A stretch of DNA of 64,000 nucleotides, taken from Pecten maximus (lineage: Eukaryota). The notes under the pieces were generated by a model. It had not been told where the DNA came from. It ran no database searches and worked only from the letters and a program-made list of their open reading frames with translations. The translations under genes were made by a program, and so were the position numbers. Location: contig NC_047017.1 in the NCBI RefSeq assembly GCF_902652985.1, forward strand, positions 17,980,001 through 18,044,000, given 5' to 3'. This document shows, in pieces, positions 17,444 through 62,743 of the stretch (positions are counted from its first letter, which is position 1; every line of letters begins with the position of its first letter).

Positions 17444-20400
17444 TCAGGATATAGAGAAAACTTTCCCCTCCATTTTAAATGATTTTCCTGATTCACTGTT
17501 CTCTGGAAGACGGGATACCAGTACCTAGAAAAGAGACATTTTATAAATTCTGTAACTTTTCAGTATGTTTTTGGATTTTAGATTGATCTATAAACTGATA
17601 GTTCATTATAAAAATGACCATATTCATATTGTCTCCATTCACTTATTTTAAGAATTATACATTTTTTGGGCAGGGGATATTTTAATGATCTTGATCCATT
17701 CAACTCCATCTTCATCAATTCTGTGTCTTGTGTCTATGTGAACATTTGATAAAAATTGAACAAAATTCTATCTAAAAATCACAAAAGTTATTAACCAGAA
17801 ATTGACATTATCACTGTGATATCCTACCTTTGGTCTGTGTATCACTGTGATATCCTACCTTTGGTCTGTGTGTATCACTGTGATATCCTACCTTTGGTCT
17901 GTGTATCACTGTGATATCCTACCTTTGGTCTGTGTGTGTCACTGTGATATCCTACCTTTGGTCTGTGTGTGTCACTGTGATATCCTACCTTTGGTCTGTG
18001 TGTATCACTGTGATATCCTACCTTTAGTCTGTGTGTATCACTGTGATATCCTGTGTATCATTGTGATATCCTACCTTTGGTCTGTGTATCACTGTGATAT
18101 CCTACCTTTAGTCTGTGTGTATCACTGTGATATCCTACCTTTGGTCTGTGTATCACTGTGATATCCTACCTTTGGTTTGTGTGTATCACTGTGATATCCT
18201 GTGTATCATTGTGATATCCTACCTTTGGTCTGTGTGTATCACTGTGATATCCTACCTTTGGTCTGTGTGTATCACTGTGATATCCTGTGTATCACTGTGA
18301 TATCCTACCTCTGGTCTGTGTGTATCACTGTGATATCCTACCTTTGGTCTGTGTGTATCACTGTGATATCCTGTGTATCATTGTGATATCCTACCTTTGG
18401 TCTGTGTGTATCACTGTGATATCCTACCTCTGGTCTGTGTGTATCACTGTGATATCCTACCTTTGGTCTGTGTGTATCACTGTGATATCCTACCTTTGGT
18501 CTGTGTGTATCACTGTGATATCCTACCTTTAGTCTGTGTGTATCACTGTGATATCCTACCTTTGGTCTGTGTATATCACTGTGATATCCTACCTTTGGTT
18601 TGTGTGTATCACTGTGATATCCTACCTTTGGTTTGTTTGTATCACTGTGATATCCTACCTTTGGTTTGTTTGTATCACTGTGATATCCTACCTTTGGTCT
18701 GTGTGTATCACTGTGATATCCTACCTTTGGTTTGTGTGTATCCCCGCTCCAGTACCCAATACACATACTTTCTGTTGTATGACCCAAATCACCTCCACTG
18801 GAAGTTAAAACATTTCCTTTGATGACATACAATTTTGTGAAGAGAAATTATATTATCTTTCAATTTTGTTATTGTATTAAACCCAAATAAGTATATTCTT
18901 TAGAAGGTAGAGACAAGAGATAAACAATTAACATCAGAGAAATAACATATCATAGCTTAAGACAAGGTGAGCTTTCATTTCCATTGGATGGTTGGACATT
19001 TTTACCACCTTAGGTATAAATTAAACTTTTTTTTTAAATTTTTGCAATCATTAGTATGCTACAACTGTCTTGTTAATCTAGATGGTATTCAGGATTTTAA
19101 TGTGGATCAATGTATGACTATCTGATGGATACGGTTGGGGTAGATGAATCATTGATGGATACGGTTGGGGCAGATGAATCATTGATGGATATGGTTGGGG
19201 TAGATGAATCATTGATGGATACGGTTGGGGTAGATGAATCATCGACGGATATGGTTGGGGTAGATGAATCATTGATGGATATGGTTGGGGTAGATGAATC
19301 ATTGATGGATACGGTTGGGGTAGATGAATCATTGATAGATATGGTTGGTTGGGGTAGATGAATCATTGATGGATACGGTTGGGGTAGATGAATCATTGAT
19401 AGAAACGGTTGGGGTAGATTTATCATTGATGGATATGGTTGGGGTAGATGAATCATTGATGGATACGGTTGGGGTAGATGAATCATTGATGGATACGGTT
19501 GGGGTAGATTTATCATTGATGGATATGGTTGGGGTAGATGAATCATTGATGGATACGGTTGGGGTAGATGAATCATTGATGGATACGGTCGGGGTAGATG
19601 AATCATTGATGGATACGGTTGGGGTAGATGAATCATTGATGGATATGGTTGGGGTAGATGAATCATTGATGGATACGGTTGGGGTAGATGAATCATTGAT
19701 GGATACAGTTGGGGTAGATGAATCATTGATGGATACGGTTGGGGTAGATTTATCATTGATGGATATGGTTGGGGTAGATGAATCATTGATGGATAAGGTT
19801 GGGGTAGATGAATCATTGATGGATACAGTTGGGGTAGATGAATCATTGATGGATACGGTTGGGGTAGATTTATCATTGATGGCTATGGTTGGGGTAGATT
19901 TATCATTGATGGATATGGTTGGGGTAGATGAATCATTGATGGATACGGTTGGGGTAGATGAATCATTGATGGATACAGTTGGGGTAGATGAATCATTGAT
20001 GGATACGGTTGGGGTAGATGAATTATTGATGGATATGGTTGGGGTAGATGAATCATTGATGGATATGGTTAGGGTAGATGAATCATTGATGGATACGGTT
20101 GGGGTTAATGAATCATTGATGGATACGGTTGGGGTAGATGAATCATTGATGGATACGGTTGGGGTAGATGAATCATTGATGGATACGGTTGGGGTAGATG
20201 AATCATTGATGGATATGGTTGGGGTACATGAATCATTGATGGATACGGTCGGGGTAGATGAATCATTGATGGATATGGTTGGGGTAGATGAATCATTGAT
20301 GGATATGGTTGGGGTAGATGAATCATTGATGGATACGGTCGGGGTAGATGAATCATTGATGGATATGGTTGGGGTACATGAATCATTGATGGATATGGTT

Positions 20401-59844: not shown

Positions 59845-62743
59845 ATGGCTGCCCTCAAAGTGGCAAAAAGCTTTCAGCAATTTCTTCAGCCAAAATATCA
59901 CCCCCTTGTGATTCAAACTGCCACAGTTGTTAACTTGTTTGATGTTGACAAAAAGAGTGGTTACAGCAATGATTTGAAAGAAAATAAAAAGAAGCATTTA
60001 ATTGACACAATTAAGTCCTTCCCAGATGAATTAAAGCTATATAAAGAGGAATGGAAAGATCACTTAAGGTTTCGTCACTACGACAGGTGGAATCTTGACC
60101 ACGGTACGTACGATTACTTGTGGAAGTTTGGTGGACAGCAGAGTATTGCTGACTGGACATTAACAACAGACAGGGATAATCTAGAGGGACAGAGTACAGC
60201 TAACCTGACTGTCAGTAAGGCAAATAATGCTTTGTTTCACGGATACCTTTCACAGGAAGTACCCAAGGACGGTATCTCAAAGAGTGCTGGCTATTGCAAC
60301 ATGAGGTCTCCTTCTAAATATGTAAGTATTGTAAAGTTGTCATTCTCTCATGTTGTGCCAGGCAATAAGCCAAGTTTGTAGTAACAAGTCCACAAATGTT
60401 TATTGTCGTTCTGTATAGATGGTAAGAAGTGCTCTTTATATATACCAGATACATGTTACATTGTATATTGATCTGTTTGTACATTATACAATAATTAGTC
60501 CTCTGCCGTTTGAAAAACGGGGGGACTATAGGTTTACCATCTGTCTGTCCGTCCGTCCGTCTGTCTGTCTGTCACGCAATAGTTGTCCGGACAACTCCTC
60601 CTAAAGTACTACTCTGATTTTAACAAAACTTGGTATACATGATCAGTATAACATGAAGTTGTGCATCCCTTATTTGTTTTGTTTTTTTTCGAAAAAAACA
60701 TTTAAAAAAAAAAAATGGGAAATGAATAGGTGCACTTCTAGCTCAGGCAGGGGACTTTGTATTGCTGTTGGAATACTATCCATCCTTGTTATTAATATCT
60801 CTTGGTAGATTTGAATATTCTGCAGCTGTCACATGTACTGTTATTGACAATTACCAGTGCTGCAGATATTTGCAGATGATTAATTAGAAGTTACACAGAA
60901 TTCATGTTGATACTAGGTCTCCCGAGTTGTGAATGTGTGTACTTGTTGTTTAGATCAAGCTGTATATGGTACAAATGACAAAGGAGTGTTTTTGCTAACC
61001 TCATTTTGCTAATATTCCCCTTGGTAAGTCATCTGACCCGAGGGGTCAAGATGACCTATGACCATTGTGTTTTGTTCATTTTCATCTACTGTGCATAAAC
61101 TTTTAACATTTCAAACTTATACTTATGTTCCACCAGTGGATTCACAGATTAAGCTGTAACTTGCCTGAAATGATCCTGAGATGGTCCAGATCAAGTATTG
61201 TTATCATTTGGGTTGGTCAGAGATGGAGATGGCCACCTTGTCTAACATACAGTAGTACACAATTGTTCTGGGTACCAATATACTGCTACTGAGTATGTAA
61301 TCTTAGCAGTACTGGGTCTTTAAAGTCATGATTGTTAAGGTCCTTGGGCCTCTTGCAAAATTTCATAATTTTTTTCATTATTTTATGAAATCTTCATTCA
61401 CAGATATCATTCAAGAGAAAACGAGCTATCGAAGATATAGGAATATACAGTCACCTAGTGTTGCGTGTACGAGGGGACGGAAGACCATACTATATCAACC
61501 TTCATATGAAACGGACATTTGATATAATGTGGTCTGACCAGTTCAACTACACATTATATACTAGAGGAGGACCCTACTGGCAGATAGCTAAGGTAAATAT
61601 TATAGTTCTAGAGGGGGACCCTACTGGCAGATAGCTAAGGTAAATATTATAGTTCTAGAGGAGGACCCTACTGGCAGATAGCTAAGGTAAATATTATAGT
61701 TCTAGAGGAGGACCCTACTGGCAGATAGCTAAGGTAAATATTATAGTTCTAGAGGAGGACCCTACTGGCAGATAGCTAAGGTAAATATTATAGTTCTAGA
61801 GGGCAACTCTCCTGTCAGTAAGGCAAGGTAGATTGTAACTATTATATACTAGAGTATAACCCTTCTTACAGATAGCCCAGGTAAATATTATAGATTTAGA
61901 GGGCAACTCTACTGTCAGTAAGACAAGGTACATTGTAACTATTATATACTAGAGGGGGACTCTACTGTCAGAAAGACAAGGTAGATTGTAACTATCATAT
62001 ACTAGAGTATAACCCTTCTTACAGATAGCCCAGGTAAATATTATAGATTTAGAGGGCAACTCTACTGTCAGTAAGACAAGGTACATTGTAACTATTATAT
62101 ACTAGAGGGGGACTCTACTGTCAGAAAGACAAGGTAGATTGTAACTATTATATACTAGAGTATAACCCTTCTTACAGATAGCCCAGGTAAATATTATAGA
62201 TTTAGAGGGCAACTCTCCTGTCAGTAAGGCAAGGTACATTGTAACTATTATACACTAGAGGGGGACTCTACTGTCAGGCAAGGTACAATGTAACTATTAC
62301 AGGTATACACTAGATCTGTAACTATTACAGGTATACACTAGATCTGTAACTATTACAGGTATACACTAGATCTGTAACTATTACAGGTATACACTAGATC
62401 TTTAGCTTTAGTTCATCGTAACTTCTATATATTAATGGCAGACAGCGGAGATTGAAAATCCATGAAATTGATAATACACTGTAAGTTCAACATAGAAAAC
62501 CAAGGTAACATTATTTTTTGTTTATTATTGCAGATTCCATTCTCCAAATTTTACTTCACCCATAAAGGCCGTAACCAGGATCACCAGTATCCCCCCGACC
62601 TTCACAACATAGAAAACATCGGAATCACCATGGCTGACAGTGTGGAAGGGCCATTCCAGCTGGAGATAGACTATATAGCTGTTTTAAATGATGCAAATCA
62701 CCAAGAGGAAACTGCTTATGAGCAATACCCTGATACCTTCTGA
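59845..62743 (+). CDS. NDUFAF1: Complex I intermediate-associated protein 30 (CIA30), 3 coding exons
   Basis: Exons 59845-60321 (WTLTTDRDNLEGQS...VPKDG...AGYCNMRS), 61404-61592 (HLVLRVRGDGRPY...LYTRGGPYWQIAK), 62534-62743 (IPFSKFY...ADSVEGPFQLEIDYI...stop). Confidence 0.95.
60494..60792 (+). mobile_element. HINE/DINE-1-like (Helentron-associated) element
   Basis: TTAGTCC...GGGGACTA short inverted repeat followed by a (GTCY)n microsatellite. Related fragments at about 50100-50315 (reverse), 21590-21790 and 61020-61240. Confidence 0.65.
61561..62400 (+). repeat. Compound array seeded at the NDUFAF1 exon-2 donor: 5 x 47 bp, then a 153-bp higher-order repeat, then 4 x 28 bp
   Basis: Unit CTAGAGGAGGACCCTACTGGCAGATAGCTAAG|GTAAATATTATAGTT. 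TAGAGTATAAC recurs at about 61850, 62003 and 62156. Confidence 0.92.

Follow-up and report, generated by a model that had tools for sequence, protein, structure and literature searches.

Minisatellites that straddle exon-intron boundaries have been described in amphioxus under the name of mirages. These are boundary-spanning tandem repeats, 5' and 3', which vary in copy number, leave splicing undisturbed and have boundary copies excluded from homogenisation; they occur in Adh3, troponin C, the globins BflGb6 and BflGb9, and PGBD5 (PMC3087553, PMC3902484). In the human F7 gene, the first monomer of the 37-bp variable number tandem repeat (VNTR) in intron 7 holds the splice junction, and mutagenesis has shown that selection always falls on the most upstream functional donor (PMC1557585). 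The first minisatellite unit also spans the donor in human IFI6 (6-16), CBS intron 13, LMNB2 and PDGF (PMC1557585). Here we describe arrays of this kind in a 64-kb stretch of genomic DNA from a scallop, Pecten maximus (the window, meaning the whole stretch analysed), where they lie at donors of the genes for TASP1 (taspase-1), SEC23, a CHP-like protein of 190 aa and NDUFAF1 (CIA30). They are probably splice-junction ('mirage') minisatellites, a by-product that is tolerated in a genome very rich in repeats, and not the outcome of a process aimed at donors. The class is already known from amphioxus and several human genes, and no new mechanism is revealed.

The P. maximus assembly holds 918,306,378 bases in 3,983 contigs. 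Tandem Repeats Finder (TRF) reported 26 tandem arrays in the window, making up 16% of its bases, and recovered all six arrays of a first-pass annotation of this DNA at the positions, periods and copy numbers given there. That annotation had described the repeat unit in four genes as an exon end plus the GT donor plus early intron, and this was confirmed: four arrays contain 10-40 nt of homology-confirmed exon together with the GT donor, which agrees with the definition of a mirage minisatellite. Junctions were read on the coding strand, and every flanking exon was checked singly by homology, without a joined spliced model. Pfam gave no match for TASP1 exons 10 and 12 or SEC23 exon 3, which are very short exons, and these were identified by PDB sequence searches in place of Pfam; the two TASP1 exons matched Taspase-1 chains alone (E 0.04-0.09). 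Arrays constitute 74-86% of four of the affected introns. Each of the four junction arrays is flanked by exon at one end and by unique intron at the other, with no terminal inverted repeats, and so lacks the combination of terminal inverted repeats and dispersed copies that marks a tandem-repeat-containing miniature inverted-repeat transposable element (MITE).

The four units differ in how much exon they include (coordinates in Table 1; a slash marks the splice site). In TASP1, the last 18 nt of exon 12 with the donor AAG/GTAGGA equal the first array unit; the authentic donor 9-mer is present in the 33-bp array in 24 exact copies, and the array occupies about 76% of intron 12. This unit is in frame, with no stop over 128 codons, which makes TASP1 the place where distal donor use would show. 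The 46-bp SEC23 unit runs from the last 17 exon nt across ACA/GTAAGT into 29 nt of intron, the 9-mer being present in 13 exact copies, and the array takes up 74% of the 846-nt intron 3. The CHP-like duplication covers the last 10 exon nt, ACG/GTAAAT and early intron, with two exact donor 9-mers. The 47-bp unit of NDUFAF1 includes the last 40 exon nt and AAG/GTAAAT; 5 exact donor 9-mers were counted, and 14 with at most one mismatch. Two other arrays begin just past donors, as had also been pointed out before: one at intron +5 after TASP1 exon 10, with a donor-like AAG/GTAGAC in every 50-bp unit and a share of about half of intron 10, and one at +13 after SEC23 exon 9.

The NDUFAF1 array is layered. 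Five young copies (98% identity) adjoin the exon and are followed by older 53/100/153-bp higher-order copies; together with the abutting 28-bp array, the 47-bp array fills about 86% of intron 2. The five exon-proximal copies carry a 1-nt insertion that the exon is without, and the older distal copies keep the exon version, a pattern which implies that a variant unit was amplified beside the exon after the array arose. Exon 2 matches complex I intermediate-associated protein 30 of the P. maximus annotation at 98-99%, and the open reading frame (ORF) of exon 1 is 99% identical to a Pecten maximus protein at NCBI.

Donor choice was followed in SEC23, for which transcript contigs from four runs, one per study, were placed on window positions 33900-39899. 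Contigs of all four studies joined 34887 to 35734 (GT..AG), the former being the first of the 14 SEC23 donors, and no contig from these studies covered any part of the 46-bp array. Since the contigs splice from the first donor alone, the array is intronic and its later copies are spliced out. At exon 9, contigs joined 37961/2 to 38383/4. In total, 13 SEC23 introns in this interval were bounded by RNA contigs, the donors of exons 3 and 9 included. The contigs show the normal SEC23 isoform alone, and contigs drop rare variants. The authentic donor is the copy attached to the exon: by RNA in SEC23, and by homology that ends at the first donor in TASP1, the CHP-like gene and NDUFAF1, where the placement also follows from the annotated protein. 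One contig, from run X8, passes from 34309 to 34801 with a single additional letter in between; in the three remaining runs the joint is 34310 to 34801, and the difference probably reflects an allele or a slip in assembly.

These results support the earlier proposal that donor-side arrays are tolerated because the first donor wins. The companion idea, that the arrays supply ranks of decoy or alternative donors, is supported for decoys, which are present as identical copies. Periods divisible by three numbered 4/15, no commoner than chance, and this lack of frame bias argues against distal donors being used in coding. In-frame units were considered as a sign of function and rejected, their frequency being at chance.

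Enrichment at donors was measured in dynein heavy-chain genes, which were picked beforehand because their many paralogues let ORF-against-ORF blastp find exons without annotation. This sample of one gene family covers 249 kb, consisting of four genes (200 kb) and 13 fragments of nine others (49 kb), with about 209 exon segments, about 177 callable donors and 175 acceptors. It contains 160 arrays, which occupy 22% of its bases, so that the array share of the P. maximus sequence sampled ranges from 16% to 22%. Tandem repeats are also the largest repeat class in the genomes of Amusium pleuronectes (21.7%; PMC10225492) and Chlamys farreri (11.3%; PMC5700196). The automated donor calls took later copies in open-frame arrays and miscalled some junctions; they were curated by eye, and both counts were kept. 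ORFs of dispersed satellites (the C13 71-bp array and C7 18672) that appeared as dynein exons were spurious and were removed.

Eleven donor-spanning arrays were found among the dynein donors, or 6.2% (95% confidence interval 3.1-10.8%). They include the last 5-41 exon nt, the GT and early intron, in units of 26-74 bp and 3 to 68 copies, and five further arrays begin 1-14 nt past a donor. The null was exposure-based, using non-array intron positions and first copies only. The probability that a non-array position in the intron interior falls in the first copy of an array was 0.040, from which 7.0 spanned donors were expected; the curated count was 11/177 (p = 0.10) and the automated count 9/174 (p = 0.26). 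Array starts per kb of non-array sequence amounted to 1.14 in the donor-spanning zone, 1.13 in the intron interior, 1.22 at positions -4 to +15 and 1.91 at +16 to +60. A crude uniform null, under which about 4-5 donor-spanning arrays were expected and enrichment appeared threefold, was dropped, as the excess mostly vanished under the exposure-based null. A strong donor motif was seen in the units of 13/120 arrays on the sense strand and 4 on the antisense strand, an excess that matches the donor-spanning arrays already counted. In the window, 4 of about 40 donors are spanned against 0.7-1.6 expected (p 0.004-0.07); the window was chosen for this pattern and, therefore, its excess was not counted as a test. 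The mutational bias toward 5' splice sites that the first-pass annotation had put forward is not borne out by the dynein start rates or counts.

Several other features of the dynein loci were recorded. An intron at C14:34567697-34572372 (gene-oriented 1650-2982) consists almost wholly of 37 copies of a 36-bp unit of exon end and donor, which is in frame and stop-free; the array stops about 35 nt before the next acceptor. C13:6845121-6848357 (2026-3237) contains a 71-bp x17 intronic satellite whose ORFs have matches among those of other dynein loci; this suggests a dispersed family, and the satellite gives rise to false exons when exons are sought by homology. The dynein gene of C13 is repeated match for match on the small contig C29, which is probably an uncollapsed haplotig. 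On C13 itself, the C-terminal dynein matches are present in two places about 34 kb from each other (6884573 and 6918100).

Acceptors are repeated as well, contrary to the initial impression that no array lay at one. Three clear acceptor-spanning arrays were found in the dynein sample, composed of the pyrimidine tract, the AG and 8-21 exon nt in 2 to 4.5 copies. Two more extend 4-7 nt into the exon, and several stop exactly at the AG. Counting 3-5 acceptor-spanning arrays against 7.2 expected gave p 0.07-0.27, and the ratio of donors to acceptors spanned was 11:3 to 11:5 (p 0.06-0.21). The larger donor count is consistent with selection that may be somewhat stronger against acceptor-side copies. 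The orthologous acceptor of the CHP-like gene is spanned by a 47 bp x8.7 array in Argopecten irradians (L053:3531-3938) and by a 39 bp x3.1 array in Ylistrum balloti (L054:2241-2361), and a degenerate relic of it lies in the window. This acceptor is repeated in all three genera with differing unit lengths, at about 2 copies in Pecten, 8.7 in Argopecten and 3.1 in Ylistrum. With the dynein acceptors, it shows that the scallop arrays share the mirage trait of occurring at both 5' and 3' exon boundaries.

The age of the arrays was examined at the NDUFAF1 loci of A. irradians and Y. balloti, found by word search; in both species, the CHP-like gene neighbours NDUFAF1 head-to-head, as in Pecten. NDUFAF1 intron 2 of Y. 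balloti contains a homologous 50-bp array of 1.6 kb which begins in the exon. The same intron in A. irradians is 287 nt long and has only a second, degenerate junction copy 50 nt downstream. Array copies number about 14 in Pecten, about 32 in Ylistrum and 2 in Argopecten. The Ylistrum array and the two-copy Argopecten relic indicate that the duplication predates these genera and grew in some lineages. The split of A. pleuronectes and P. maximus has been dated to about 130 million years ago (PMC10225492); the placement of Ylistrum relative to that node is uncertain. The 30-bp donor duplication of the CHP-like gene was not found in the Argopecten or Ylistrum orthologues and is, therefore, specific to the Pecten lineage.

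Table 1. Junction-associated arrays and their flanking exons in the window (coordinates in the window).
Feature	Position	Strand	Evidence
TASP1 (taspase-1) exon 12	18725..18797	-	Sole PDB matches are to Taspase-1 residues 371-388, weak
TASP1 exon 12 array, 33 bp x29.1	17809..18742	-	TRF and sequence reading
TASP1 exon 10	22593..22706	-	Sole PDB matches are to Taspase-1 residues 294-316, weak
TASP1 exon 10 array, 50 bp x12.2, 98% identity	21981..22588	-	TRF
SEC23 exon 3	34801..34887	+	Human SEC23A residues 94-121, E 6e-8; RNA joints 34310>34801 and 34887>35734
SEC23 exon 3 array, 46 bp x14.0, 98% identity	34871..35512	+	TRF
SEC23 exon 7 duplication, 21 bp x2, 25 nt past the donor	37259..37299	+	TRF; absent from the first-pass annotation
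SEC23 exon 9	37847..37962	+	Sec23_trunk, E 3e-8; RNA joints
SEC23 exon 9 duplication, 65 bp x2.0, from intron +13	37975..38105	+	TRF, RNA joints
CHP-like 190-aa gene, penultimate coding exon (EF-hand)	50847..50927	-	EF-hand_1, E 1e-6; orthologous exons in two scallops
CHP-like donor duplication, 30 bp x2.2	50793..50856	-	TRF
CHP-like degenerate relic of acceptor and exon start	50928..50965	-	11/12 nt identical, below TRF threshold
NDUFAF1 (CIA30) coding exon 2 of 3	61404..61592	+	CIA30, E 6e-8; tblastn of annotated P. maximus protein
NDUFAF1 47-bp array	61553..62299	+	TRF 61553-61802, 47 bp x5.3, 98% identity; degenerate copies to 62299
28-bp x4 array, 100% identity, abutting the NDUFAF1 47-bp array	62289..62401	+

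The scallop arrays resemble amphioxus mirages in that units of 10 to about 160 bp span the exon-intron boundary, splice signals are repeated, with the normal mRNA in the SEC23 contigs, and the exon-proximal copies differ from the bulk, here in TASP1 and NDUFAF1. They differ in belonging to another phylum (a bivalve mollusc), in having a measured frequency (about 6% of sampled donors) and in that orthologous arrays common to genera are shown. The F7 VNTR has the same arrangement, with 5-9 identical donors of which the most upstream is used, but its unit includes 4 exon nt versus 10-41 nt in scallop; it is also a single gene in which donor choice was tested by mutagenesis, whereas the scallop case is a genome-wide habit followed by transcript contigs only. 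LMNB2 and PDGF likewise use the authentic donor alone, and IFI6 and CBS use the two nearest pseudo-sites as well (PMC1557585); no such use was seen in the scallop contigs, which miss rare isoforms. The Rogers model of intron gain across an AG/GT proto-splice site (PMC3087553) also duplicates a segment bearing splice signals, and the SEC23 unit has a pyrimidine tract and AG before the copied exon end, but scallop copies stay in an existing intron and create no new intron or exon. Bivalve tandem-repeat MITEs such as DTC84 of Donax (PMC3879986) are, like the present process, a source of short intronic arrays. The scallop junction arrays differ from them in being built from local exon sequence and not brought by a mobile element.

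As a tolerated by-product, such arrays could form in the following way. Short tandem duplications with units of 20-75 bp would arise very frequently in scallop introns, at close to random positions, through slippage or unequal exchange, and some would include the last nucleotides of an exon together with its GT donor. All new copies would then lie downstream of the authentic donor. If splicing keeps to the first, exon-attached donor, as in mammals, where first-donor use is attributed to 5'-to-3' scanning in the F7 model, the mRNA would be unaltered and donor-side copies would presumably be neutral, leaving the array free to grow, homogenise and enlarge the intron. The mirror event takes place at acceptors too, where the last copy is used, and such arrays seem to be retained somewhat less often. 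Purifying selection on the exon part of the boundary copy may keep an intact template, so that the array could persist or regrow over very long periods.

The opposing account places the cause at the donor itself, as a mutational bias to 5' splice sites due, for example, to slippage coupled to transcription or splicing, to R-loops or to U1-bound DNA-RNA hybrids, and we consider it unlikely. It would explain why the window has four spanning arrays and three more starting within 25 nt of a donor where 0.7-1.6 spanning arrays are expected, the dynein count of 11 against 7.0, the 11 donors against 3-5 acceptors, and the rise to 1.9 starts per kb at 16-60 nt past dynein donors versus 1.13 in the interior. 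However, there is no significant excess in the sample picked independently of the pattern, where arrays start at the same rate in the spanning zone as in the interior. Near acceptors there is a mild rise of a similar kind, which suggests short-intron geometry rather than a property of donors, and arrays start 5 to 41 nt before the donor in exons, without a fixed anchor. Some of our own data weigh against arrays placed close to random and tolerated. Window donors are spanned more often than the local background predicts, donors overall are spanned at 1.3-1.6x background and 2-4x the rate of acceptors, and the 13 SEC23 introns defined by RNA contain three arrays, every one of which begins within 25 nt of a donor. 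The dynein exon ends come from paralogue homology and a simple splice score, not RNA, and a sample of this small size could still hide a real twofold excess on the donor side. In addition, first-donor use is shown for SEC23 alone, from assembled contigs, and nonsense-mediated decay would conceal out-of-frame products of distal donors, which would reach a stop within 17 codons in SEC23 and 13 in NDUFAF1.

A reading that gives such an excess more weight takes junction minisatellites as a distinct, long-lived component of gene structure, with a template held by the exon, a real donor excess of about twofold due to splicing-linked bias or a benefit of U1 sites, and occasional in-frame use, as in TASP1. 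The NDUFAF1 donor repeats and CHP-like acceptor repeats common to Pecten, Ylistrum and Argopecten would accord with it, and we judge it improbable. Still less probable is that the arrays are kept for function, either as extra U1 sites that aid exon definition or suppress premature polyadenylation, or as in-frame alternative donors that lengthen the protein. The open TASP1 unit, the open C14 dynein array (36 bp x37), the persistence of the NDUFAF1 array across genera and the use of the first two pseudo-sites in human IFI6 and CBS (PMC1557585) speak for this, but in-frame periods are at chance, SEC23 contigs show the first donor alone, copy number and even presence vary freely among genera, and the arrays are at the neutral expectation. 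An origin of the arrays, or of their copy numbers, in faulty assembly of a repeat-rich genome is very hard to credit. One amphioxus mirage was reported as mis-assembled in a draft genome (PMC3087553), and the copy numbers here are those of the assembly. Nevertheless, arrays of this kind recur on many chromosomes, at more than 15 junctions; another genus, whose genome was assembled independently, has a homologous NDUFAF1 array; and RNA connects the two exons around SEC23 intron 3 in the way that the assembly predicts.

Further repeats were noted in the window. TASP1 intron 11 (about 2.5 kb) is 84% occupied by two abutting arrays at 19123-21216 (30 bp x44 and 20/40 bp x36), whose + strand is strongly enriched in G (GC skew +0.33) and whose transcript is, hence, C-rich. 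Two 22-bp arrays, at 28470-29503 and 12648-12802, have palindromic units and long near-perfect inverted flanking repeats; the 30 nt that precede 28470 form the reverse complement of the 30 nt that follow 29503, and 12648-12802 is bordered in the same manner. From their sequence, both look like the tandem-repeat-containing MITEs of bivalves. Downstream of the NDUFAF1 stop codon, a 34-bp x23.6 array (63205-64000) runs past the end of the window. The unit looks similar to a tRNA 5' half, with acceptor stem and D-arm, and the array was perhaps derived from a tRNA-related short interspersed nuclear element; ARAGORN found no tRNA in it. A putative donor 9 nt before this array was rejected as an exon end because it lies past the NDUFAF1 stop codon.

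The window is a good natural example of a general rule, by which the first donor meets no competition from identical ones downstream, and it indicates that introns can swell by minisatellite growth rather than by transposons. It also carries a warning for annotation, since gene predictors and short-read aligners may choose the wrong copy of a repeated splice site. Finally, the arrays common to scallop genera offer a means of dating the turnover of minisatellites and of testing whether anchoring in an exon prolongs the life of an array.

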